NCBI RefSeq assembly: GCF_001194135.2
Contig: NC_068998.1
Coordinates: forward strand, 18,014,002 to 18,077,943
Length of the DNA stretch: 63,942 bases
From: Octopus bimaculoides
Taxonomy: Eukaryota
Direction: 5' to 3'
Both the position numbers and the translations under genes were made by a program. Below are positions 1 to 55,099 of the stretch, one piece after another. The notes beneath the pieces were generated by a model that saw nothing but the letters and a program-made list of their open reading frames with translations, searched no databases and was not told the DNA's origin. Numbering within the stretch: the stretch's first letter is position 1; every line of letters starts with the position of its first letter.

Positions 1-46
<46 letters not shown>

Positions 47-307
47 TCTTGCTACACACTGCATCAAGAGAGAAATCTCTCATTCTCTCATTGTTTCTAC
101 TATAAATATATATACATATATGTATGTATGCCTCTGTGTGTGTGTGTTATGCACCTGAAACTTTCTCTAAGCACTTGTCTCTGTCCTTGCTTTCCAAAGC
201 TCTACACACTTTGAATTACAGATCTCCAAACTGAACAATATCAGTAATATAGCAAAAAACTACTAGAATGATCATGATACCTCATCTCCTCTGGTTTCCT
301 AATAGTC

Positions 308-519
308 CTTTCTACTAAAAGCACAAGGCCTGAAATTGTGGGGGCGAGGGGTAGTCTATCACATTGACCCCAGTGCATAACTGGTACTTATTTCATCAAT
401 TCTGAAAGGATGAAAGGCAAAGTTGACCGCTGTGGAATTTGAACTCAGAACAAAAGACGAACAAAATGTCACTAATCATTTTGCCTGGTGGGCTAACGAG
501 TCTACCGGCTCACCACCTT
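308..519 (-). mobile_element. tRNA-derived SINE, family A (degenerate)
   Basis: Aligns by eye to the younger copy at 58712-58931 (GGATGAAAGGCAAAGTYGACC, TTTGAACTCAGAAC). Confidence 0.8.
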
Positions 520-906
520 CTGGTTTCCTAATAATACATTGCTTTTGTTATCATCATCATTTTTATGCCTGCTTTTCTCCCACATGCTGTCTTGAACTGG
601 ATGAGCCACATTGAAGCAGCTCTTTCTTTCTTGGCAAACCTTAACCTGTTTTTCAGGTAAGATGTGTTCATTCTACTGCTATTCACACATCAAAACCATC
701 AACATATTTTTTCACAGGAGGCTTAAGCATGTGTCACTATTTTTGCTCATTGACGGTGTGAAGGCATGCGTATACAAGCACTCATATACATACACACAGA
801 TGCAAAACATGCTAGGTGTGGGAGATAGAAACTGTACAGAAGCTCATTGTTTTATGTATGTATGTATGAAAGTGTGTGTGTATATATATTTATATATATT
901 TATATA

Positions 907-1267
907 CAGGGTGCAGGGAATAAATTGTCATCTGAATTACACAAAAATGAAAATAACATTGACATCTCATTTTAACAGATATATTTTCCAAAATTACATA
1001 AAAATATCTTGAAATATTAAAGAGTAAATTTATACAATAAAATCACCATTGGCTTCAGCCGACTTCAGAATCTCCTGCAACTCTTCTGGGCAGTCTCCTT
1101 GTTTAAGTTGGTGAATGCTGTCATAATCCTTGCCTTCAGTTCATCTTTGGTGTTACAAGTTTTGTTGGTCTCTTGCTCAACTGCACTCCACACATAATAG
1201 TCAAGGGAGTTGCAGTCTGGCGAGTTAGGTGGCCAGATGTTTGGGGTGATGTGGTCACAGAAATTGT
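907..1267 (-). mobile_element. Tc1/mariner (DD37D-type) 3' fragment
   Basis: TA+CAGGGTGC terminus; minus strand encodes NIWPPNSPDCNSLDYYVWSAVEQETNK...KSCRRF; homologous to the 3' end of 44957-46217. Confidence 0.9.
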
Positions 1268-1440
1268 ATTTCAAAGGGCCAGCCTTGTCACATTTTGTGC
1301 CATGCTGAATCTCTCTGAGAATTATGTTGAGGGTACATGTGCCTGTGGAGTGCTCAGCCACATGCATATTAATTTCATTTTCAAGCTGTTCCATTGATCA
1401 GATCAACTGGAGCCCTTGTTGTCATAACCAGTGGAGTGCC
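1265..1440 (+). mobile_element. SINE 3' tail T1 fragment
   Basis: Matches the reverse complement of ~5700-5880 (TATTTCAAAGGGCCAGCCTTGTCACA...GGAGTGCC). Confidence 0.8.
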
Positions 1441-1454
1441 AGATAGTCCTCTGT

Positions 1455-1721
1455 AGTCTAAGAGAGACAGTTCTACAATTTCTTGCTGAACAACCTGCAT
1501 AAAATGATTTGTTTCTAGTGATCAAATTTTTGTGCTGTTCATTAGCTCACTCCCTCCATCAAAAATTGACCTGCACGCGTGCATGTTGTGTCGAAATGAT
1601 TGCAGAGCTCTGTGAGATTAAGTGTTTTGCTCAAGAATACAACACACCACCTTGTCCAGGAATTGAAACCACACTCTTGCAATTGGGAGTGCAACATCTT
1701 AACCACTAGGCCATGGGCTCT

Positions 1722-1723
<2 letters not shown>
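1455..1723 (-). mobile_element. tRNA-head, CORE-like SINE with tail T3
   Basis: Minus strand has TGGCCTAGTGG (A box), GGTTTCAATTCC (B-box-like) and TTCTTGAGCAAAACACTTAA; tail shared with 5395-5665. Confidence 0.75.
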
Positions 1724-1761
<38 letters not shown>

Positions 1762-2598
1762 NNNNNNNNNNNNNNNNNNNNNNNNNNNNNNNNNNNNNNN
1801 NNNNNNNNNNNNNNNNNNNNNNNNNNNNNNNNNNNNNNNNNNNNNNNNNNNNNNNNNNNNNNNNNNNNNNNNNNNNNNNNNNNNNNNNNNNNNNNNNNNN
1901 NNNNNNNNNNNNNNNNNNNNNNNNNNNNNNNNNNNNNNNNNNNNNNNNNNNNNNNNNNNNNNNNNNNNNNNNNNNNNNNNNNNNNNNNNNNNNNNNNNNN
2001 NNNNNNNNNNNNNNNNNNNNNNNNNNNNNNNNNNNNNNNNNNNNNNNNNNNNNNNNNNNNNNACACACACACACACACACACACACACATCTATATATAT
2101 ACTCACATACACATGCAATTATGTGGCACCAGTTGAAGATTGGGCTCACCAAATCTTAATCTCAAACAAAAAATACAAAAATGAAATATAATAATATAGA
2201 AAATTTTAGTTCTTTTCATTGATCAATTTGGTGATTCACACAGTAAATTTCAGTGGCCATGTCTTATATATAAAACAGAGATAAAGTTGAAAACCCATTT
2301 ACACAGTATTAACAGAAGAAATTAATCATTAAAAGCAGTGACCATGTGGTAGACACTAGTTTACGTATTCTCTTGTCTTCTTCATCGAACTTTCTCTTAT
2401 TGAATTAAATGACTTCTTCCTATTGTAATACTTATTTCTTTTGACCAATTTCTTGTCATTAGTTGGAACTTTGTTCACTTCTGAGATTATTCTTTATCCC
2501 TCATTCTTACTTGAATTTCTTATACCATTCATTAACTACACAAAATCTCCACAATAAACATAAATTAAATTGTTATTAAAAATATTAATGATGGAGTG

Positions 2599-2811
2599 AA
2601 GGTGGCAAACTGGCAGAATCGTTAGCACACCTGGCAAAATGCTTTGCTGCATCTTCACATTCTTCACATTCTGAGTTCAAACTCCATCAAGGTCAACTTT
2701 ACTTTTCATCCTATTGTATTCAATGAAAAGAGTACCAGTTGAGCACTAGGGTCTATGTAATTGTCTTACTCCCTCCCTCGAAATTGCTGGCTTTGTGCCA
2801 AAATTTGAAAT
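2599..2811 (+). mobile_element. SINE family A
   Basis: TGGCAGAATCGTTAGCAC head, TTCTGAGTTCAAA, AGTACCAGTTGAGCACT. Confidence 0.8.
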
Positions 2812-2874
2812 CACTGTGATGGATTGAAATGGGAGAAATCTTGTTTCATCTCTAATCTTTGCCCACTTATTCAT

Positions 2875-3195
2875 AGGGTTGGGGTGACTGCAAGGGCAAA
2901 GTCCTCAAGTACACCTTCCATTAGGTCCTGTCAAATGCAATCGTCTCCAGTTGATTTGGCTGGATCCCCAAGTTAGACCAACCAAGCTCATCGATGTTAT
3001 CTACCCATCTTGTTTACAGTCCACACCTGGGTCTCCTGCCAATCAGTTTTGCCCATAAAACCTGTCCAGCAGTTCTTTCCTGAGACATTCTTACTACATG
3101 TCTATAGTATTAGGGCTGTGATCACTCAATAGAAGAAATCAACTTATTATTTTGTTGTATGAGATTGTCCAAAAGATTTTCTGTTGATCTGAGGC
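2875..3195 (-). mobile_element. Degenerate LINE 3' fragment (RTE-like)
   Basis: Minus strand translates to HVVRMSQERTAGQVLWAKLIGRRPR...TRWVDNI, resembling the RTE-clade ORF C-terminus; stops present. Confidence 0.6.
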
Positions 3196-3224
3196 ATACT
3201 AGATCTAACATTAAAGTGTGCTTA

Positions 3225-3386
3225 AACCTTTACTTCTCAACCACATGGTTCTGAGTTCAGTCTCACTGTGTGGCACCTTGAGCAAGTGTCTTCTACTATA
3301 GTCTCAGGCCAATCAAAGCCTTATGAGTAGATTTGATAGAAACTGAAAGAAGCCCACCATATATATGTGTGTGTGTGTGTGTGTGT
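3225..3386 (+). mobile_element. SINE family D 5' part (CORE-like)
   Basis: GGCACCTTGAGCAAGTGTCTTCTACTATAG...GAAACTGAAAGAAGCCC, then (TA)/(TG) microsatellite. Confidence 0.75.
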
Positions 3387-3644
3387 ATCTAACACACCTG
3401 CTTGCTCCCTGACCTGTCTTTGTTTTGTGAACATTTGAACTATCAGATGCTCATATCATCAGCCTCTAAGGGACATGTTCAACTGATTATGGTTGAGCAA
3501 CTGAATGCAAATCTGTGGTCTTGAGCAGAATATTATCTGTAGCTCATCCTTTACCCCAAGACAAAACATGTACATGTTAACACTTCCAATCAGTTAAGAT
3601 CAAAAGCCTTGAGAGTCTTTGCTTGGTTTATTATTACTATTATT

Positions 3645-3852
3645 GGCAAGCTGGCACAACTGTTAGCATGCTGGACAAAATTCATAATGGTATTTCGCCG
3701 GTCTTTACCTTCTGAGTTCAAATTCCACTGAGGTCGACTTGGTCTTTCATCCTTTCTGGGTCGATAAATTAAGTACCAGTGAAACACTGGGTCAATGCAA
3801 TTGACTAGTCCCCTCCCACCAAATTTCAGGCCTTGTGCCTATAGTAGAAAGA
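3645..3852 (+). mobile_element. SINE family A with (TTA)n tail
   Basis: GAGGTCGACTT...TTTCATCCTTTCTGGGTCGATAAATTAAGTACCAG. Confidence 0.85.
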
Positions 3853-3859
3853 ATTATTA

Positions 3860-3894
<35 letters not shown>

Positions 3895-4131
3895 TATTAT
3901 TATTTCCATCTAAAAATAAATAAAATTGGTAGACAAAATGCTTGATGGTATTTAATTTACATTCCAAGTTCATTTCCTTCTGGAATCAACTTTGGCTTGA
4001 TAAACTAGGTACCAGCCCAGTACTAGGGTTGATTCACCATTAATCCTTACTATGGCTGGCCGGTAACATATTTTTCTGCAATGTATGGATAATTTATCCT
4101 GATCATGCGTTTGAGAATAAAAAAATTTATA

Positions 4132-4175
<44 letters not shown>

Positions 4176-4178
<3 letters not shown>

Positions 4179-4415
4179 GATGGGCTTCCACTCAGTTTCC
4201 ATTTACTAAGTTCACTCACAAGACATATATATATATGTATATGTATGTATATATGATGGGCTTCCATTCAGTTTCCATTTACTAAATTCACCGACAAGAC
4301 ATTGGTTGGGCTGGAGCTATAGTAAAAAATACTTGCCCAGGTGCTGTGCAGTGGCACTGAACCCAAAACTGCATAGTTGCAAAGTAAACTGCTGATCTAC
4401 ACAGCCTGCCTGCAC
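4176..4415 (-). mobile_element. SINE family D 5' part with a local ~50-70 bp duplication
   Basis: ATATGATGGGCTTCCA(C/T)TCAGTTTCCATTTACTAA occurs twice (~4176 and ~4252). Confidence 0.7.
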
Positions 4416-5394
4416 TTATATATGTGTGTGTGTGTGTGTGTGTAGTTGTGTGACTGAATGTTGATGTTTTGCTGCTTCACTTGTCATCATCTCAGTGAAA
4501 CAGTGATATGGTATTTACGTCCCTCGTTGATAATATGACTGGCCACTGCGCTTGTGAAGACCAGTGGGAAAAAAAAAAAATTCTTTACTAGGAAATCAGG
4601 TAAAAGTTGGTGACAAGAAGGGTATTTGGCCAAATAAGTCCCCTCTTCAACCCTTTCTTGTATGAGAAAATGGGTGTTAAATAAAAAAAAACAAGTACAC
4701 CATTAAAAAGAAAGCATTATACATAAATGTACACACACACACACACACACCTCTTATTACACTTAACACATCACTAAACCTTATGAGATATTCCCATCCC
4801 ATTAATCATTATGTTATGCACCACTAACCATAAGACAAGACACACCCACATCTGTCATTATGAACTGCCTCCACCAATCATTACACATTAACCATAACCA
4901 CAAGCCAATGAAGGAGTCTTGACTTACTAAAATTTTCAAATAAATTTCCCTCAAATCACTCTTACCATCTTTAAAAAAATTGTGTTTGTATGTGTGTGTG
5001 TGTGTGTGTGTGTGTATGATGTTGTATGCCTTTGCTCAGTCAAGCATGATCTGGAGTTAAACAATAACAACACTATAGACGACTTACAATTATACAAAAT
5101 ACAATTATACAATCATTACAACACATCTCATTAACCATTGCTCTATACTTTTACAACAATTACATCACACACTTGTAATTACTAGACCACACTTCAGTGA
5201 TCATTGCATCACACACCAACAATTATTTTTACATGCACCATAAAGTAACAAGATAACTTCTACTTGATTGCTTGACCTGCTATAAATAGTAGCCAAATTT
5301 CCTTGCAAGTCACATTCTAAAATGAATTAAATAAGGAAGAGCACATTTGAATTAATGGCAGTCTTTCAAGTCTGAGGAAGATGGTTCTGTCACT

Positions 5395-5665
5395 TCTTGC
5401 TGGAGAACTGAGACAGATGATTTGCTTCTAGTGGTCAAGTGTTTGTGTTGTACATAAGCTCTCTTTCCATCAAATTGACATTGTCTGTACAGATGCACAA
5501 GTGTGCCATACATCAGATGTTGAAGTGATTACAGAACAATGTGAAAATGGAGTGTAAATGAAGTGTTTTACTCAAGGACACAATACTCCACCCAGTCTGG
5601 AAATTGAAACCATGGTCTCTTGATTGTGAGTGCAACAGCCTAACCATTAGACCATATGCCTTCAC
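5395..5665 (-). mobile_element. tRNA-head, CORE-like SINE with tail T3
   Basis: Homologous to 1455-1723. Confidence 0.7.
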
Positions 5666-5679
5666 ATTAGATTACATAT

Positions 5680-6078
5680 TGTTATTGTTGTTGTTATTGT
5701 CGGCACTCCGTCGCTTGCGACGTCAAGGGTTCCAGTCAATCCGATCAACGGAACAGCCTGCTCGTGAAATTAATGTGCAAGTGGCTGAGCACTCCACAGA
5801 CACGTGTACCCTTAACGTAGTTCTCGGGGATATTCAGCGTGACACAGTGTGACAAGGCTGGCCCTTTGAAATACAGGTACAACAGAAACAGGAAGAAATA
5901 GTGAGAAAAAGTCATGGTGAAAGAGTACAGCAGGGTTTGCTACCATCCCCTGCCAGAGCCTCGTGGAGCTTTAGGCGTTTTCGCTCAATAAACACTCACA
6001 ACGCCCGGTCTGGGAATCGAAACCGCGATCCTATGACCGCGAGTCCGCTGCCCTAACCACTGGGCCATTGCGCCTCCA
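5680..6078 (-). mobile_element. Young full-length tRNA-derived SINE (head + central domain C2 + tail T1)
   Basis: A box TGGCCCAGTGG, B-box-like GGTTTCGATTCC, (AAC)n tail, 7-bp TSD TACATAT at 5673-5679 and 6079-6085. Confidence 0.9.
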
Positions 6079-6259
6079 TACATATAGTTATATGCTCCTA
6101 AAATAGACAAGATTGCCACAGCTGGAATATCTGTGATCATAGGTATACTCAATCAGAGTTAAACAACATCACCTCTAACTATTAATCCACTAATCCATCA
6201 AACCAATGATAACTGAATCATTCCTTACTTTTATTATATTGCCTTCAATTTGTTTACAG

Positions 6260-6296
6260 TTGGAGAACAAATGTTTGAACTATGCTGTGAACATTG
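6260..6296 (+). CDS. Possible internal exon (LENKCLNYAVNI or GEQMFELCCEH depending on frame)
   Basis: Pyrimidine-rich acceptor ttgtttacag and weak donor TTG|gtgtgt; no recognised homology. Confidence 0.25.
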
Positions 6297-6484
6297 GTGT
6301 GTGCATTGTGAAGTGTTTTGTATAGTATTTGTTTTGATAATAAATACCACATTAATAGTGTTATTTAGAGCGTTGTTGATCATATTAACTGAATTATTTG
6401 TGTTGTTTGACATCTTCTTGACTTCTGTTGCAATTGGATTCACATCCAGGATGCATTACTGAAATTGATTCAGTACTTGCCAAT

Positions 6485-6682
6485 AAGGCGGTGAGCTGGC
6501 TGAATTGTGCCATGAAGCATTTTGTCTGTCTTTATATTCTGAGTTCAAATTCCATTGAGGTCATCTTTGCCTTTCATCATTTTAGGGTCAATAAAATAAG
6601 TACCAGTTGAGTACTGTGGTCAATGTAATCAACTTATCCACACCTTTGAAATTGCTAGCCTTGTGCTAAAATTTGAAGCCAA
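6485..6682 (+). mobile_element. SINE family A (degenerate)
   Basis: AAGGCGGTGAGCTGGC head, TTTGCCTTTCATC, GATAA/CAATAAAATAAGTACCAG-type core. Confidence 0.8.
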
Positions 6683-7320
6683 TATAATTACTGACAGGCT
6701 GAAGAAAATGACTGGCATAGTATTTAAGCATTGAATGTGTTGTAAATTACATCAGAAAATTATGCTAGTTTTGTAAATACTATGTTAGCTAGTTTATTTG
6801 GTTATGTCACTAATATTGTTAACATTGTCTCAGCTATATTATTTGGTTGGAGTGTACTGAATTATATATTGACTGTTATATAGAACATCTATAATTTGTT
6901 TTCTTGTGTCCAAACATAAATGAGTTCTGTTACTTGACAAGCCCTTACTCAATGAACTTTATCCTACTGGAAGTTATCTTTCAATTTTTTCTTGTTTCTG
7001 TTTTTATTATTATATTTCAAATGTTTCTCTTAGCCAATGTCTCTTAAGTGCTATTTAAGCATTAGTTCAATAACTTCAGATATAATGTTAATCCTCTTGA
7101 TGGTATTTTCTTGAGCTGTGGGTACTTTCTATTGTTTATAATAAAAAATAATTTAAAAAATTAGCAACAAATAATTGTATTTTCTCCAAGATTGCATGTT
7201 GGAACTAAAACAGTAGCATTTATGATGAAAGACATTTAAAACACACACACACATGCATGCGCGCATGTTTTTTTTCTGTAATAGTATTCCAAGTGGAAAA
7301 GAATATAGCCATGTAGCATA

Positions 7321-7373
<53 letters not shown>

Positions 7374-7597
7374 TTATAAAAGAGCTTTTTGATACTTAAA
7401 TAATACATCTTACTATTATGAAATAAAAGTAAAATGAATATATCTCTGTCAAAATGCAAATAGCATTTGATCTATTACAAATTGTGTGAAGTTCTTGTTT
7501 TATTTGTTGTTAATTTTTCAGTCATTAATTCTCTTAGCATTTGCTCTGTTTAGCATTAAATTTGAAACTCAGAAATCTTATGAAAGAAAGAAATATA

Positions 7598-7765
7598 CTC
7601 TCTCGCTCTGTTGCTCTCTCTCTCTCTCTCTCACTTGCTCTCTCTCTCACTTGCTCTCTCTCTCTCTCACTTGCTCTCTCTCTCTCTCTCACTTGCTCTC
7701 TCTCTTGCTCTCTCTCTCTCTCTCTCTCTTCATCTTTCTTTCTCTTTTTCTCCCACTCTCTTTAC
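7598..7765. repeat. (CT)n compound repeat with recurrent TCACTTGC units
   Basis: Directly visible; CTCTCACTTGCTCTC occurs four times. Confidence 0.9.
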
Positions 7766-7998
7766 TTCTATTTCATTAGTCCAGACCCTGACTACATCAG
7801 TTGTGTTGTATTCCTAGGCAAAACATCCCTTTGATTGTTTTGGTTTGCCTAATTAGCAAAAAATAGATTTGACTCCTACTTTATAATCAAGTGGTTAGCA
7901 ATAGATGGTATTGCTTATTTTCCTTCTTTTAACATGTTTGACAATTATGATGTACTTCACAGTTTAAGGAATAAAAGATTAATTAAAATGATAAAGCA

Positions 7999-8032
<34 letters not shown>

Positions 8033-8545
8033 AAACTACACTTTTCACTGTCCAACCACCACCACCACCAAGGTTCAGTCAAAGTTATTAACCATTTGAG
8101 ATTATTTTCATTTCTTTTCAGTTCAGTTCAGCTACATATCTGCGTGTATATCTATTGATATATATCTCTCTCTGAATATCTGTTGATGTATCTGTAGACT
8201 CATCTCCCTACCTACCCCTCCTCTCTCTTAGTCTCCCCTTCTTCCCTGTCTGTCTATATCTCTCACTCTCTATATATATAGTTCTCCATTCGAGTTATTA
8301 GCTCCCTAGGCATAAGTGCAACACATGGACAAAGCAGACAAGAATGCATAGAATTATATAATTGTTAAGCAAATATTTAGAACATAAACTAACATGAAAT
8401 TTTGATGGAAAGTTATGATTTAGATCACTTTAAAGCAAGATGGTTGTATCATAGATCCAGGAGTGGTCTCAGGCAGGTTGGTATCAAAAGGATTAAATAT
8501 TCTTTGCAAATCAAACTTGGTTCTCTTTTTGTTTGTCTTTAACAG

Positions 8546-8554
8546 CCTGAGAGA
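8546..8554 (+). CDS. Candidate 9-nt microexon CCTGAGAGA
   Basis: Strong acceptor ttctctttttgtttgtctttaacag, consensus donor gtgagt, GCATG just downstream. Confidence 0.45.
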
Positions 8555-8851
8555 GTGAGTGGCATGTTTTTTTAAAACTCTCATTGCTCTCTTCATACAC
8601 ACACATACACACATGCTTAGTCTTTATTGATATAATTTAAGCAAAAGCAACATTAGTTAGTTCACATTACTCTGTAAAGAGCATAGGGCTGGTTTCCCAG
8701 TTTCTCTGAGATATGTATTCCTCCCTGGATGGGATGCTAGTCCATCTCAGTATTACTCATTTGGATAAATAATTCTCTTTATATTTACATGTTTTAGTTC
8801 CTTTTTTTTTATGCTTTTTTATTGCTTAATGCTACTTTGTAGTATCTTTTG

Positions 8852-9246
8852 TCTTTTACTTGTTTGAGTCATTAGGCTGTGGCCATGCTGGAGCACTGCC
8901 TTATGACATTTTAGTCGAACAAATTCACCCAAGTATATACTTATTTCTTTTTCTTTGAGCCTGGTACTTATTCTATCAGTCTCTTTTGCCAAACTACTAA
9001 GTTACGGGGACATAAACACACCAACACCAGTTGTCAAGCAGTGGTAGTAGTGGTGGTGGTGGGGACAAATACACACACACACACACACACACACACATGA
9101 TGGATTTCTTACAGTTTCGGTTTACCAATTCCACTCACAAGGTTTTGGTTGGCCTGAAGCTATAGTAGAAGACATTTGCCCAAGGGATTGAACTAGGAAC
9201 CATGTAGTTGGGAAGCAAACTTCTTATCACACAGCTACACCTGCAC
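8852..9246 (-). mobile_element. SINE family D, full length
   Basis: Collinear with 9582-9982; internal (CA)n tract. Confidence 0.85.
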
Positions 9247-9581
9247 TTAGTACAACTTCTAGATTTTCTGTCCCATTAAAGATATATTAGATTGCACATT
9301 GAGGTAATCATATTCTAACAAAAACCCTTTCCTTTTGTCTTGGCTCATAAAACATTTGCTGAACTATATATGCAGTGCTTTAAGTATAATATGTCAAATA
9401 CCTGCTATTGCTGCTTTTTAAATGGTAAATTTCATTTCAATTTCTGAAATGAGGAACTATCTTTTTTATTATATTCATTGATATATTCAGGCTAGTGTCC
9501 TCATCTTGGTTGTTATACTCACAATGTATCTGACAGCAACTGTTTTTACCAGCTTTCTTCGTGTGTTTGTTTTTATTTACC

Positions 9582-9982
9582 CTTTTACTTGTTTCAGTCA
9601 TTTGACTGTGGCCATGCTGGAGCAGCGCCTTTAGTCAAACAAATCGACCCCAGGACTTATTCTTTGGAAGCCTAGTACATATTCTATCGGTCTCTTTTGC
9701 CGAACCGCTAAGTTACGGGGACGTAAACACACCAGCATCGGTTGTCAAGCGATGTTGGGAGGGACAAACACAGACACGCAAACATATACACACACACATA
9801 CATATATATACATATATATGACGGGCTTCTTTCAGTTTCTATCTACCAAATCCACTCACAATGGTTTGGTCGGCCCGAGGCTATAGTAGAAGACACTTGC
9901 CCAAAGTGCCACACAGTGGGACTGAACCCGGAACCATGTGGTTGGTAAGCAAGCTACTTACCACACAGCCACTCCTACGCCT
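9582..9982 (-). mobile_element. SINE family D, full length, younger
   Basis: Minus strand: tRNA-like head GGCGTAGGAGTGGCTGTGTGGTAAG, GGTTCAGTCCC, CORE-like GGCACTTTGGGCAAGTGTC, internal microsatellite, 3' end GACTGAAACAAGTAAAAG. Confidence 0.9.
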
Positions 9983-10562
9983 GGTAATGTTCTTGAAAAC
10001 TGAATCCAAACTTTTTGATAACTCCACACACTAGACTGCTCTCATACCAGGGAAACACTGCTTAGTTATTCTACTAATTGTGATGCTATAATAGCTCGAC
10101 TAACTTGGGGCATTGAACTCACACCTAATACCAAAACTACTTCACTTAACACTTGACTATATTTACTATCCTTATTCAACAATAGGAATAGTGAATATAA
10201 GCATTAATTAATTGTTAAGTGCAATAGGTTAGTTAGTTGGTAGGAGTTCAGTTTCTCAGTTTGGCAAGCTGTAGATACTCTGGATGAAGCAGCACAAACT
10301 CAGAACACCACAAGTAGCAGAGTAACTAAGGAGAAGAACAACACTGATAAAAACAATAGAGTAAGAAAACTTTATCCTCATCACCTTATTAAAGGGTTTT
10401 CATCCAAATTCTGAGAATATTATCAAATTCAACAGGCATCTGAAAAATGGTGGAAAGGACAATGACCAAAATAATGTGACTACAACAACCAAGATGTGGA
10501 CAGTGGTCCTTATATACATCAGTGTATTATTTTTAAATAATGTATTTATGAGTCATTGGATG

Positions 10563-10717
10563 TTGTCATCATCATTATCATCATCGTTTAATGTCCGCTT
10601 TCCATGCTAGCATGGGTTGGACGATTTGACTGAGGACTGGTGAAACCGGATGGCAACACCAGGCTCCAATCTAAATTTGGCAGAGTTTCTACAGCTGGAT
10701 GCCCTTCCTAACGCCAA
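10563..10717 (-). mobile_element. Retroposon 3' tail E ending in (GAT)n
   Basis: Second copy at 46308-46433 (GTTTAAYRTCCGCTTTCCATGCT). Confidence 0.75.
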
Positions 10718-10801
10718 TGTGTATATATTTATGTGTATATTATCCTTTTTATCAATTTCAGTTTTTATTATTATTTGTTTATGTTTATGCATGTCATAAA
10801 G

Positions 10802-10806
10802 TTGTG
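10802..10806 (+). CDS. Candidate 5-nt frameshifting microexon TTGTG
   Basis: Perfect donor gtaagt at 10807; AAG acceptor after a 38-nt AG-free U-rich stretch; TGCATG at 10788-10793. Confidence 0.45.
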
Positions 10807-11116
10807 GTAAGTTTGTGTTAAACCAAATTGTCAGCAGCTTCTTTGATTTCAATTTCCAACTGAAACATATACAATTGTAGAACTAATATTCTTGAGGAAA
10901 ACATAAACATCACAACATCTTGTTTATATTATCAATGTTCTGAGAGAAAACATAACCATCACAACTTCCCCCACTTCCATCCCCTTGTAACTATGAAATG
11001 CCATTTATTTTTATAAAGAATTTTTTGTTTGTTTGTTTGTTTGTTTGTTTCTTTCTTTCTTTCTTTGTATCAAATTTTCTAATAAATGGAAAACCACTGA
11101 TTTCTTTTCTTTCCAG

Positions 11117-11313
11117 ACTCATTTATAGGCAGCTGTGATTATTCCTGTGTGTACCCTGGTGAAAAATGGCCGGCCAACAGTCTGCAGTCATTCTGTGATG
11201 TTGTCATGCAGGTTACTAATTCACCAACCAACAGAGCAGCAGCTGCAGCAGCAACACTTTCAGACAAAGACACTGAAGATGAATCTGATATGGTTACAAC
11301 ACCACAGAGTTGA
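11117..11313 (+). CDS. Putative terminal coding exon of an unidentified gene
   Basis: Acceptor ctgatttcttttctttccag; phase-1 frame is open for 64 full codons (SFIGSCDYSCVYPGEKWPANSLQSFCDVVMQVTNSPTNRAAAAAATLSDKDTEDESDMVTTPQS) and ends TGA TGA; phase 0 gives THL*, phase 2 gives LIYRQL*. Confidence 0.6.
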
Positions 11314-11393
11314 TGAGTTGATTGCAACAGTAGCATGTGACTGTTTAATATTTTAATTTCCATCTACTTTCTGCCATCAACCTCATTCAGATT

Positions 11394-11432
<39 letters not shown>

Positions 11433-11452
11433 GCTACCAATTTATCTATCTA

Positions 11453-11484
<32 letters not shown>

Positions 11485-44956: not shown

Positions 44957-46217
44957 CAGGGTGCGATGGGTAAATTGTCGCCATTTCATATTTTAAATTT
45001 CGCGTATGTGTATTGCTTGTTTTTGATTTTATCGGCTACACAGTATAGTAGGGTCAGCTGGATACCGTCTATGAGAAAACAGCACGATGACGCTATCCAT
45101 TCTGCCAGGAATTTGGAAACGACATGCTGTACAGCTTGGCATTCGCGCCGGAAGCTCTGATACGAACATTTCAGAGTGTTTGGGTGTCATTCTGAGGACA
45201 GTGCAAAGCATTTGGAAAGAGTTGGATGAGTCTAATGGTGATTACAAAGGTACGGCAGCTCGGAAAACTCACTCTGATCGCCCTGATAAGAAAAGAACTC
45301 CTGAATTTGTTGGTGGGACCCAGGCTATGATTGACAACGATCCTTCCAAGTCATTGAGGTTCATCACCAGGGACATGAGAGTGTCAGAGTTATCAAGCAA
45401 GTTTGCATGAAGACAATAGGTATTCTACATACAAGATGAGAAAGGGCCAATTTTTATCCCAAGCCACCAAGGACGAGAAGTGAGACCATGCTACGAAGCT
45501 TTTGAACAAAGCTCAAGCATCCCCTCCAACCGAACATGCTTTAGTTTTTCTCAGACGAGAAATATTTCTACGAGGATCAGATGGTGAACACACAGAAGGA
45601 CCGTTATGTACCGAGAGTAATAAAAATGAAACATCCAGTCAACATCATGGTGTTTGGGGTGATCATTATTGATGGCGATGTTATGCCTCTATTCATCTTC
45701 CCACGCGGCCTCAGACATAGCACAATGCCTGGAGGAGGTAATGCTGCCCTGGGTCAAGAGGGTGACTGTTACAAGACCCTATGTCTGGCAACAGGACTCT
45801 GCACCACGCCACACAAGCAGGGGAACCCAATCATGACTGTCAGACAATTTCTGCAACCACACCGCCCCTAACATCTGGCCACCTAACTCCCCAGACTGCA
45901 ACCTCCTTATTATGCATGGGGCGCAGTTGAGCGAGAGACCAACAGAATTCCTTGTAACGCCAAAGATGAACTGAAGGTAAGGATTATGGCAGCATTCACC
46001 AACTTAAACAAGGAGACTGCCCAGAAGAGTTGCAGGAGATTCGGAAGTCATCTGGAGGCCGTGTTTGAAGGCAATTGCGATTTTATTGAATAAATTTATT
46101 CTAGTATTTCAAGATATTTTAATGTGATTTTGGTAAATATATCTGTTAAATTGAGATGTCAGTGTTATTTTCATTTCTGCGTAATTTAGACGACACCAAT
46201 ATATTCAGTGCACCCTG
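44957..46217 (+). mobile_element. Full-length Tc1/mariner, DD37D (maT-like), inactive
   Basis: TA|CAGGGTGC...GCACCCTG|TA; motifs VFSDEK, WQQDSAP, WPPNSPDCN; 37-residue D-D spacing when completed with the 907-1267 copy; frameshifts. Confidence 0.95.
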
Positions 46218-46306: not shown

Positions 46307-47558
46307 TTCATCATTATCATCGTCGTCGTCATCGTCGTTTAACATCCGCTTTCCATGCTGGCATGGGTTGGACGGTTTGACTGAGGGCTGACGAGCCAGA
46401 AGGCTGCACCAATCTCCAATCTGATCTGGCTGGNNNNNNNNNNNNNNNNNNNNNNNNNNNNNNNNNNNNNNNNNNNNNNNNNNNNNNNNNNNNNNNNNNN
46501 NNNNNNNNNNNNNNNNNNNNNNNNNNNNNNNNNNNNNNNNNNNNNNNNNNNNNNNNNNNNNNNNNNNNNNNNNNNNNNNNNNNNNNNNNNNNNNNNNNNN
46601 NNNNNNNNNNNNNNNNNNNNNNNNNNNNNNNNNNNNNNNNNNNNNNNNNNNNNNNNNNNNNNNNNNNNNNNNNNNNNNNNNNNNNNNNNNNNNNNNNNNN
46701 NNNNNNNNNNNNNNNNNNNNNNNNNNNNNNNNNNNNNNNNNNNNNNNNNNNNNNNNNNNNNNNNNNNNNNNNNNNNNNNNNNNNNNNNNNNNNNNNNNNN
46801 NNNNNNNNNNNNNNNNNNNNNNNNNNNNNNNNNNNNNNNNNNNNNNNNNNNNNNNNNNNNNNNNNNNNNNNNNNNNNNNNNNNNNNNNNNNNNNNNNNNN
46901 NNNNNNNNNNNNNNNNNNNNNNNNNNNNNNNNNNNNNNNNNNNNNNNNNNNNNNNNNNNNNNNNNNNNNNNNNNNNNNNNNNNNNNNNNNNNNNNNNNNN
47001 NNNNNNNNNNNNNNNNNNNNNNNNNNNNNNNNNNNNNNNNNNNNNNNNNNNNNNNNNNNNNNNNNNNNNNNNNNNNNNNNNNNNNNNNNNNNNNNNNNNN
47101 NNNNNNNNNNNNNNNNNNNNNNNNNNNNNNNNNNNNNNNNNNNNNNNNNNNNNNNNNNNNNNNTATAAGAGTAATATGTCCATTCTGCTGAAATGAAATT
47201 TCAGTAAATTTTCTGTATCCTTGTGCAGCTGAGGATTGCTCTGCATTTTGCATTACTTAAATAAATGGAGTTGCATGAAACGTGCGTACTGCAATAACCT
47301 TGAAAACCCGTGTTGCTGTTTTTGATTTTATATATATATATATATACATGTATAATATTCGATTAGAGGTTGTGTTAACCTCATGAAGGGATGGTTTCAT
47401 CCAAGGAAAATACTGGTTTAATACCTAACTTCAAATAGAATTTAATAATTAACTTTTATTAGTTGCTCTAGTAATAAATATATATAAAAGGACTATACTG
47501 GCATAATGTAGCTAAATAAAATTGATATATATATAGATACATATATAAATTATATATA

Positions 47559-48763
47559 CAGGGTGCGTTAGGTATTTGAGGACATACCTTCTTTGGGTCA
47601 TTGCTGCATTTTTTGCTAACTCTGTATAATCTTTGTTTCAGAAAATGGCAGACACTCAGCTTATTCAAAAACTGAAGAGGCATGCTGTTATTGTGGTTAT
47701 AAAGGCTGAGCATAGCGATTTAGAAATATCTAGATTTTTAAAAGTTGCCAGATCTTACATCTACAAAGTTTGTAAGGAGCTAGAGACTGAAGATGGAAAC
47801 GTATCACCAGTATCAAAGCATAAAAAGTATCCTAAACACTCTGAAATCATCAGAACACCAGACCATTGATTACAATTCCAGAAAGTCCATGAGGTCAATT
47901 GCAAAAGATCTCCATGTATCAGAAGGAACAGTCAGAAATGATGTCCACGAAGACATCAGGTATAAATCTTATATGATAAGAAATGGTCAATTTGTCAGAA
48001 AAAGCAAAAGAAAATCGCTACATCAGATCTAAAATGCTCTTGAAGAAACTGAAAAATCCAGCAGAAGATTTTATTTGGTTTTCTCAAACGAGAAAAACTT
48101 CGACCAAGATCAAAAAGTTAACAGAAGAAATGACAGATTTCTGTTATGTGCAGACCCTTCTGAAGTTCTAAGTGTTATGCATACAAAATTTCCTGCAACT
48201 GTCATGGTTTTAGGGGTTGTCGGCAATTAAGGACATGTGATGCCGCCTTACTTCTTTCCACAAGTCCTTAGAGTTAACTCTGCCGCCTACATTGAGGTCT
48301 TAGAAATAATTCTTAAGCCATGGATAGACAATAAGTGTTTTAGTAAGACTCTTCAACATGCTCTAGTAACACAAGCATGGAAGGTTGAAAATTTTCATGA
48401 TCACATAACCCCTAACATTTGGCCACCTAATTTCCCAGATCTCAATCTATTGGACTATTACATGTGGAGCGTTGTTGAGAGAGAGAGAGAGGTCATTGAA
48501 CATGCCCATAACATCAAAGATCCTTTGAAAGCTGCCATAGTCAGAGTAATGTCCAAAATGAACCAGGACCACTTGATTCGAACTTGTAGATGATTTAGAT
48601 CTCATATACAAGCAGTTGTTGAAGCTGAAGGTGGCTTTATTGAATAACATTATAGAAAAGGTTTATTCTCATACCATTTTTTGATAAATAAAGTTATCTG
48701 TTGTTATATATCTGTTCTTTTTTTATAAACATAAATCTGTCCTCAAATATCTTACGTACCCTG
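47559..48763 (+). mobile_element. Full-length Tc1/mariner, second maT-like subfamily, inactive
   Basis: ~26-bp TIRs (CAGGGTGCGTTAGGTATTTGAGGACA vs CAGGGTACGTAAGATATTTGAGGACA), TA TSD; KFPATVMVLG, WPPNFPDLNLLDYYMW. Confidence 0.95.
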
Positions 48764-52064: not shown

Positions 52065-53130
52065 AACACTTATAGACAAAAATCTGGCATGGCGATGGGA
52101 ACGATGGTAGCCCCTACTTTTGCCAACCTTGTCATGGCATACTTAGAAGTCCAAATATACTTAACCAAAAAACTTAACCAACAGCATTAACCACAGTATC
52201 CAGTTCACAATGGAATACAGCAACAAACAATTACCCTTCCTGAACATCTTAATCATAAAAAGAGATACTGAAATTGAAACCGACATCTTCAAACCAACAG
52301 ACTCAAAACAATATCTTCTATTCTCCTCCTGCCACCCAAAACATTCTAAAATAAATATACCGTTCAACTTAGCAAGAAGAATTTTCACGATTGCATCAAA
52401 TCCCGAAACCCGAGAAAAGCGACTCCAAGAACGTAAAAACACATTACTAGATAGAAAATACCCCGGCCAGTCTAATCAAAAACGGAATAGAACGTGCAAA
52501 AATGATAAACATCCAAGAGTTTCGGAAAACAAGAAAGCACCATGACACACTTAAAAATTTATCTTGCGTATCATCACACAATCCGAGGAACAGGGAAGCA
52601 TACAACATCATCCACCAAAATATACCCTTACGAAAGACCTGCGAATGAAAAAGGCACTGGAAACATATAGGATTATCAAAAGCAAGAGACAACCGCAATT
52701 CCTAAAAATGTTACTCACCAGCGCCAAATTACCTACCAAAAATACAACCCCACTAGTCAAAAAGTGCAACCGCCCTAACTGCGGAACTTGCATCTTCCCC
52801 TTAGAGGGCTCAACATACAAATTTAAGTCAGGTCAAACATTTACCTGTGATTCGAAGAACTTAATCTATGTCTTCAAATGTGGAGGGTGTGGTGGAAACT
52901 ACATTGGTCAAACTAGTTTAACTTTGAGAGACTGACTAACGGTGTACAGGCAACAAATCCGGGACCCCACGACTAGGAAAATTTCCATAAGCAAACACCT
53001 AGACCAATGCCTTGTAAATATAAACTCGAAATGCCAAATCTTCCCTATCTATCAATGTACCGCAGACACTTTAACACGATTCCGTTTAAATAAGGAAAGC
53101 ATCCTTTAGAAAGAAGACAAAAAACACTAA
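52065..53130 (+). mobile_element. Penelope-like element, internally deleted, pseudogenised
   Basis: GMAMGTMVAPTFANLVMAYLE, LPFLNILI, SSCHPKH, KCNRPNCGTC, KNLIYVFKCGGCGGNYIGQT (GIY-YIG). Confidence 0.95.
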
Positions 53131-54632: not shown

Positions 54633-55099
54633 TGTGTATGTATGTATGTATGTATGTATGTATGTATGTATGTATGTATATGAGAGTGGTCTGAGAAAAT
54701 TATATTTATCACTCCCAAAATATTATGCAGGTATGATTCACTGTAGAAATTCATGAAAAACAGCATTTCTTGTATAGAGATGAGGAGGTACTAACATACC
54801 TTGGCCTTCTGAATTTTGAATCTGTAATTTCAAAGTGTTCCTAACCCGAATCCAGATCAGGTCATTTCACAGCGTAAACTACAAATAAGGCGGTAGATCC
54901 TACGTTAAAGTAATGTCGAAATTTCTTATGACTGTTACATTGTCGGGCGAATCATCTGAATTTATGAATATTAAAACAGGAGATAATAAAGATAGCAGAA
55001 TGAACTTCCGAATACAAAAAAGAAACACGACAGGTCCAGTAAGTGAGTGGAAACCTTGTTTGAAAATTTAAGGAGAAAGATTTTTATTAGTCTCAATGA

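Follow-up and report, generated by a model that had tools for sequence, protein, structure and literature searches.

A candidate five-nucleotide cassette exon with two predicted C-terminal ends in an octopus type I PIP5K gene

Introduction

In a stretch of 63,942 nucleotides from Octopus bimaculoides (contig NC_068998.1; hereafter the window), the pentanucleotide TTGTG is placed between an acceptor-like AAG and a donor-like GTAAGT, a short distance in front of a terminal exon that is open in two frames. The locus raises the question of whether five nucleotides can serve as an exon which, by being included or skipped, decides between two C-terminal ends of one protein. Such a toggle had been proposed in an initial annotation of this DNA, in which the gene was left unnamed. 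Type I PIP5K, to which the gene was assigned in the present analysis, makes PI(4,5)P2, and the location of the enzyme decides where the lipid acts. In vertebrates, this location is set by C-terminal splice tails and a PDZ motif. The segment at 10802-10806 was judged to be, with good probability, a real exon that is used alternatively.

Sequence features of the TTGTG site

The window belongs to a repeat-rich draft eukaryotic assembly and contains 14 N gaps. The site was read directly from the + strand, with AAG at 10799-10801, TTGTG at 10802-10806 and GTAAGT at 10807-10812. All positions given in the initial annotation for these three elements, for the 38-nt AG-free zone, for UGCAUG and for the 310-nt distance were correct on re-reading of the sequence. 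The features are as follows.

10759-10761, + strand: competing strong CAG acceptor; with the donor at 10807 it would bound a 45-nt exon, 10762-10806
10762-10799, + strand: AG-exclusion zone of 38 nt (no AG between 10761 and 10800), 61% T and 66% pyrimidine
10781 and 10787, + strand: candidate branch-point A residues within 10762-10799; the branch point is probably in the U-rich tract
10788-10793, + strand: UGCAUG, 7 nt 5' of the acceptor AG; its TGC begins 12 nt ahead of the AG
10800-10801, + strand: acceptor AG (AAG) of the 5-nt exon, a weak 3' splice site
10802-10806, + strand: candidate 5-nt cassette microexon TTGTG; when included, it would complete the codons xTT-GTG and place the terminal exon in the T-H-L-stop frame
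10807-10812, + strand: donor GTAAGT, fully complementary to U1 (G/GUAAGU)
10807-11116, + strand: last intron, 310 nt, with the strong acceptor ctgatttcttttctttccag at its 3' end
11117 onwards, + strand: terminal exon, starting with ACTCATTTATAG and preceded by a strong pyrimidine tract and CAG
11117-11128, + strand: dual-coded 12 nt, ACT CAT TTA TAG (T-H-L-stop) in the included form and (x)AC TCA TTT ATA G (D-S-F-I) in the skipped form
11119-11313, + strand: tail reading frame, SFIGSCDYSCVYPGEKWPANSLQSFCDVVMQVTNS, followed by a poly-Ala and acidic region and TTPQS; stop at 11311-11313

The short intronic segment AAG/TTGTG/GTAAGT at 10799-10812 is bounded by AG and GT and thus has the outline of a cassette microexon (3-27 nt). 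UGCAUG at 10788-10793 combines UGC in the position of an SRRM-type enhancer (10788-10790) with the Rbfox-type motif GCAUG. The 45-nt exon starting at 10762 had been described as frame-neutral. This did not hold: in the phase assumed in the initial annotation it reads x-FIIICLCLCMS-stop, and it is not neutral in effect because of an in-frame TAA at 10797-10799.

A SINE-like repeat with a (CAT)n-like start is present at 10563-10720 and again at 46314-46433, the copies being approximately 81% identical. The first copy stops about 80 nt 5' of the microexon acceptor, and part of the context upstream of the microexon is therefore young; the second copy enters an N gap.

Identification of the gene

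The tail frame was used for a HMMER scan of 1.84 billion representatives, which returned protein P0001 (E = 1.2e-09, 69% identity over residues 11-52). P0001 originates from Logan assemblies of sequencing runs, in which it is carried by ten contigs from ten runs and two accession series. These contigs stem from a related species and are spliced mRNAs. A single ORF of 857 codons in contig L002 contains the PIP5K domain PF01504 (E = 2.4e-95). Its product matched the structure of zebrafish PIP5K1A (4tz7) with E = 2.4e-159 and type II kinases with approximately 1e-42, and the named relatives of the contig-encoded protein are mollusc PIP5K type-1 proteins. On these three grounds the gene was assigned to type I PIP5K, so that the gene left unnamed before can now be identified by the orthologous terminal exon on a PIP5K-coding mRNA.

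In blastn comparisons, positions 675-815 of contig L001 aligned with 11116-11256 of the window at 79.6%, and no alignment was obtained upstream of 11116. Since homology ends exactly there, the acceptor at 11116/11117 is a confirmed exon boundary. No PIP5K coding exon was found in 1-11116 of the window, which implies an intron of more than 10.8 kb on the 5' side of 10802. Contig L008 starts with 24 nt of Illumina adapter, which were rejected as an exon boundary.

Word-index protein searches with the tail gave no match in a database from which cephalopod proteins are apparently absent; with the C-terminus of the kinase, the best matches in the same database were gastropod proteins (45-54%). In the locus of the snail Candidula, kinase exons were traced to residue 774, and no recognisable T-x-L terminal exon or tail was found within 10 kb past the annotated end. 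The terminal-exon pattern had 0 matches in a metagenome scan, and neither Rfam families nor tRNAs were detected in 10000-12000. A match of the tail to P0002 (264 aa, E = 1.9e-4, 37% identity to the first 42 residues) was set aside as probably spurious, its score being summed over repeats; P0002 consists of four tandem repeats (SFLASALFTCLRGAKWHADELQQFSRLSFVHMP...).

Four contigs (L003, L005, L012 and L013) have a common start base just ahead of ...NSAFKKTQTPLKHSPSKK. The oyster isoforms P0010 and P0016 diverge at the same place (IPTPLKHSPSK vs IPTHLRQKMALKHSPSK). The common contig start and the oyster isoform difference together hint that a second region, located behind the kinase domain, is alternatively spliced.

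C-terminal end of the included form

In all ten contigs the long ORF runs through ...CCGGAGGAAGTG into ACTCATTTATAG and closes with EEVTHL-stop. The codons at its end are GAC AGG CCG GAG GAA GTG / ACT CAT TTA TAG, corresponding to ...DDRPEEVTHL-stop; written across the junction, the related-species ORF ends in ...GAGGAAGTG/ACTCATTTATAG. GTG directly precedes ACTCATTTATAG in each of the ten contigs, and the frame of P0001 comes next, out of register. The x-V-T-H-L end that had been predicted for inclusion is thus the actual end of the long ORF in the RNA contigs of the related species. At the place where the window has TTGTG, that is before ACTCATTTATAG, the related transcripts have AAGTG, with three of five bases matching. 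For the source species, the expected included form would be ...TTGTGACTCATTTATAG, with the protein end ...VVTHL. All ten assembled runs show the VTHL form, and inclusion may therefore be the default and not a special case.

The form of a class I PDZ ligand, also predicted before, was recovered in the window and in the related mRNAs, where T-H-L-stop agrees with [S/T]-x-hydrophobic; judged by its form, the VTHL end is a putative ligand. Comparable T-[RH]-L ends were found in 9 of 120 PIP5K1 relatives (ETEMTRL, ETEITHL, DETVTRL). Among the nine are a nematode and marine-metatranscriptome sequences, the latter probably of arthropods. Contig L010, a transcript with a T-[RH]-L end, has no tail ORF after the stop. 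From the distribution of T-[RH]-L ends and the single ORF of L010, it follows that the T-x-L end is old and the tail lineage-specific.

Invertebrate PIP5K1 proteins from metatranscriptomes (P0031, P0039, P0040, P0042 and others) have the ends ...ETEM, ...ETEMTRL, ...ETEMVSQRP... and ...ETEMVYLYP.... The variation behind ETEM points to an identical exon boundary just before T-R-L-stop, where other phyla would have ends that are alternative or retain the intron.

Coding potential of the tail frame

Skipping after a phase-1 exon had been expected to yield an acidic tail of about 65 residues. Translation of the terminal exon in this frame gives D-SFIGSC...TTPQS-stop, i.e. 65 aa with 10 acidic and 3 basic residues; an example of the tail-frame peptide is SFIGSCDYSCVYPGEK. 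An ungapped block of 106 nt from 11117 was compared with its counterpart in the related species. Of the 21 differences, 5, 0 and 16 are at tail-frame codon positions 1, 2 and 3, and dN/dS is 0.05 in the tail frame vs 1.4 in the THL frame beyond its stop (binomial p = 7e-5). The tail frame of the related species stays open over 141 codons despite a large insertion (p = 2e-4). TT(P/L)QS and the stop are conserved at the tail end, after which similarity ceases. By these comparative measures, the tail is genuine coding sequence under strong purifying selection in its own frame. As this selection acts on coding sequence, both C-terminal ends would have to be made, and from it we infer a skipped isoform.

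The dual-coded 12 nt at 11117-11128 are identical in the related species; elsewhere in the block, 52% of third positions differ. The first difference between the species in the terminal exon occurs immediately 3' of TAG.

Other reading frames of the terminal exon were rejected as coding. The frame-0 ORF at 11129-11353 (+ strand, 75 codons) meets a stop after 24 codons in the related species, and an ORF of 74 codons on the minus strand (11139-11363), open across the terminal exon, was likewise discarded. Exact look-ups of window ORFs in three frames gave no match. Look-ups of seven guessed skipped-form fusion proteins also gave no match, and a search for fused proteins with P0001 returned only P0001 itself; both kinds of search have low power.

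Entry into the tail frame

The tail does not contain a Met, and in the related mRNA a stop codon interrupts its frame 6 codons ahead of the junction. For these two reasons the tail can be entered only as a C-terminal extension, by a change of frame at the junction. Independent translation of the tail was rejected, since a Met is lacking, and so was A-to-I editing of the stop codon, which would extend the wrong frame.

When AAGTG was deleted from the related mRNA, the upstream sequence ended in phase 1, and ...RPE-D-SFIGSC... was continuous in the tail frame. The phase-1 upstream exon assumed in the initial annotation is therefore what the related-species ORF has after removal of five bases. 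Other ways of changing the frame at this place were considered. An alternative acceptor is not possible in the window, because 11101-11115 contains no AG and a tail-frame TGA is located at 11098-11100. A frame-shifting alternative donor GT was not found in the last 21 nt before the junction of the related mRNA, nor was a canonical -1 slippery heptamer (X_XXY_YYZ) in ...GAA GTG ACT CAT TTA TAG. The core of the earlier proposal, a 5-nt frame toggle between two ends, is supported by the VTHL mRNAs, the selected tail and the fit of the phase.

Chance expectation and alternative explanations

Taken by itself, the splice motif is near chance level, and so is the 64-codon ORF behind TTGTG. For AG-N5-GTAAGT, the single-strand expectation is 0.17 per 10.7 kb, and a second + strand instance is located at 55032. 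Features resembling those of eMIC exons discriminate weakly: a short 'exon' with 20 nt or more free of AG and a pyrimidine content of 60% or higher was found at 6 of the 25 GTAAGT sites of the window, and TGC within 20 nt at 8 of the 25. TGCATG occurs 41 times in the window, with 41.4 expected from shuffles. ORFs of at least 64 codons number 209, vs approximately 100 in Markov simulations, and ORF length was for this reason rejected as evidence for the tail. The TTGTG site gains significance solely through the cross-species transcript evidence.

GTG, taken from the related-species mRNA, was therefore required in the motif count as an independent constraint. The number expected per 10.7 kb is 0.0014 for AG-NN-GTG-GTAAGT and 0.01 when GTRAG is allowed. 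The sole match to AG-NN-GTG-GTRAG(T) on either strand of the 64-kb window is that at 10800, 310 nt before the terminal exon. With a probability of coincidence of about 0.001-0.01, we infer that TTGTG supplies the GTG in the source species.

These figures bear on the explanation that TTGTG is a chance motif and that the penultimate exon ends with ...GTG and is spliced straight to 11117. The tail frame would then be reached by a phase-1 junction between 11117 and another upstream exon or promoter, by skipping of the penultimate exon or by ribosomal frameshifting. The expectation for AG-N5-GTAAGT and the many GTAAGT sites with like surroundings speak for this explanation, and the related transcripts are compatible with it, as AAGTG, which differs in its first two bases, could be the end of the penultimate exon and not a separate exon. 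The mRNAs on which the microexon model draws all come from the related species. Against chance stand the rarity of a GTG match with consensus sites on both sides, the failure to find a frame-shifting GT, an alternative acceptor or a slippery heptamer, and a phase that fits the removal of 5 nt exactly. This explanation was considered unlikely.

Less probable still, and very improbable in absolute terms, is a microexon that is real but constitutive, with the tail ORF as a conserved untranslated element or relic and no switch. The included form in 10 of 10 assembled runs and the failure of the low-power look-ups to find the skipped form would agree with it. The ratio of 16:0:5 differences at tail codon positions 3, 2 and 1, together with the low dN/dS, the frame kept open despite the insertion and the conserved TTxQS with its stop, argues against it, because codon-position bias, open frame and conserved end are the signature of a translated sequence and not of an RNA element.

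Pairing of the donor at 10807 with the CAG acceptor ending at 10761, which is much better than AAG, lies 40 nt further 5' and has the better pyrimidine tract, would give the 45-nt exon and a truncating poison or alternative end; it is scarcely credible, since the U-rich insertion is present in 0 of 10 related transcripts, just five bases separate the coding sequence from ACTCAT, and the product would be without both conserved ends.

Proposed model

The explanation regarded as probable in its entirety is that the last intron of a PIP5K1 gene harbours TTGTG (10802-10806) as a cassette exon of 5 nt. All exons further 5' would be situated outside the window, past its 5' end, and the penultimate one would close in phase 1. 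With the microexon included, the terminal exon from 11117 would be read as Thr-His-Leu-stop, and the kinase would end with ...x-V-T-H-L-COOH; this [T]-x-L end, which PIP5K1 of other invertebrates has as well, conforms to the class I PDZ-ligand pattern. With the microexon skipped, the same exon would be read one base out of register, giving the 65-residue tail, predicted to open with a conserved module (about 35 residues, Cys-containing) and to continue with poly-Ala, an acidic segment and TTPQS. Neither form is expected to be a target of nonsense-mediated decay, because both stop codons are in the last exon.

The candidate regulatory elements would be the UGC/UGCAUG 7-12 nt upstream, the weak AAG, the long AG-free U tract and the perfect donor. 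These elements are consistent with a regulated choice between inclusion and skipping. It is possible but doubtful that the choice is a regulated binary switch of neurons or muscle, driven by Srrm-eMIC or Rbfox and conserved in cephalopods, which swaps an ancestral bilaterian PDZ-ligand end for a lineage-specific tail in a role like that of the splice-specific PIPKI-gamma 90 tail in vertebrate synapses and adhesions. If this were so, neuron-type C-terminal isoforms of PIP5K would have arisen convergently, and 12 nt would be selected in two frames.

A single exon of 5 nt would choose between the ancient T-x-L end of arthropod-like and nematode orthologues and a conserved lineage-specific tail. 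As a frame-shifting microexon both of whose products have evolutionary support, it would be a clean case; exons of this kind also tend to escape standard aligners and pipelines for annotation. Were the choice tissue-specific, it would offer a handle on the localisation of phosphoinositide synthesis in cephalopod neurons or muscles.

Comparison with known systems

Vertebrate PIP5K1C owes its variants to cassette exons that keep the frame or to alternative terminal exons, tens of nucleotides in length. The octopus gene belongs to the same enzyme family as PIP5K1C gamma 87/90 and, under the proposed model, would resemble it in alternative splicing at the 3' end and in identical catalytic cores with different targeting tails. 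PIP5K1C differs in that it is not known to have a 5-nt frame shift by which one exon is re-read, and homology of the tails is not demonstrated. A conserved YxxV in the octopus tail presumably recalls the YSPL of gamma 90. PIP5K-gamma 87 and 90 are the two major C-terminal variants of PIP5K1C (PMC10572892), and targeting of PIP5K gamma 90 to the uropod was described (PMC3757496).

A C-terminal PDZ-binding motif of PIP5K1B was reported (Manes et al. 2010, FASEB J 24:3381, as cited in PMC3757496). PIP5K1B is likewise of type I, and the kinase is localised by its last residues, which serve as a PDZ ligand. The vertebrate motif tells paralogues apart and is not reported as splice-switched, whereas ...VTHL is a putative ligand here.

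Exons regulated by eMIC proteins (SRRM3/4, Srrm234) have a long AG-exclusion zone, a U-rich tract and UGC near a weak 3' splice site (PMC8797185). The UGC architecture of such microexons had been claimed for the TTGTG site, and the 38-nt AG-free zone, AAG and UGC at 10788-10790, within about 15 nt of the 3' splice site, match this list. The likeness comprises the tiny exon, the AG-exclusion zone, the U tract, the UGC by a weak 3' splice site and the short downstream intron (PMC8797185). It differs in that the length here is not a multiple of three, and the donor is perfect as opposed to the weak 5' splice sites in the fly. UGCAUG, whose position by the 3' splice site is no more than suggestive, could equally be an Rbfox site. 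Where such a site lies 5' of an exon, its usual effect is repression of that exon.

The C-terminal switch of JNK p46/p54 is a 5-nt splice difference produced by alternative 3' splice sites, and REST4 contains a 16-nt neural exon that truncates the protein. Both resemble the octopus case as frame-shifting exchanges of the C-terminus by a few nucleotides; REST4 truncates, whereas two conserved ends are predicted here. GluA2-long and GluA2-short differ by a small change at the final junction, through which the reading frame is carried on into the last exon and the PDZ-binding end is lost (PMC8257547). This frame-switching splice choice over a PDZ ligand is comparable to that proposed here, but it is made by an alternative donor in the penultimate exon and not by a cassette microexon. 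Alternative frame-shifting microexons and alternative C-termini are of a kind already known. The octopus case would be distinguished by the combination of a 5-nt cassette, one terminal exon read in two frames and selection on both products.

Other features of the window

The last intron contains a 35-nt direct repeat (10885-10919 and 10934-10968) with the core CAUCACAAC. This core is complementary to AAGUUGUGGU, which comprises the microexon and both splice sites (10799-10819). RNA folding of 10780-10975 placed the pairing of repeat and microexon in both the MFE and the centroid structure; with z = 0.29 vs shuffles it was not significant and was not used as evidence.

Downstream of the terminal exon, (TC)n and (TATC/TGTC)n microsatellites occupy 11395-11498, starting about 80 nt past the tail stop. 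The first AATAAA is located at 12642; in the related mRNAs, the poly(A) site follows the tail stop by about 430 nt.

Three regions (1068-1397 on the - strand, 45075-46090 and 47630-48590 on the + strand) contain ORFs that by eye resemble remnants of Tc1/mariner-type transposases (...HITPNIWPPNSPDCNSLDYYVWS...), and a Pfam search of these ORFs gave no match at E <= 0.01. Two related retroelement remnants with RT-like ORFs are located at 16648-18082 and 52165-53106 on the + strand. As in Penelope-like elements, a GIY-YIG nuclease domain is also encoded by the first of them (PF01541, E = 2.9e-06, 17804-18082).
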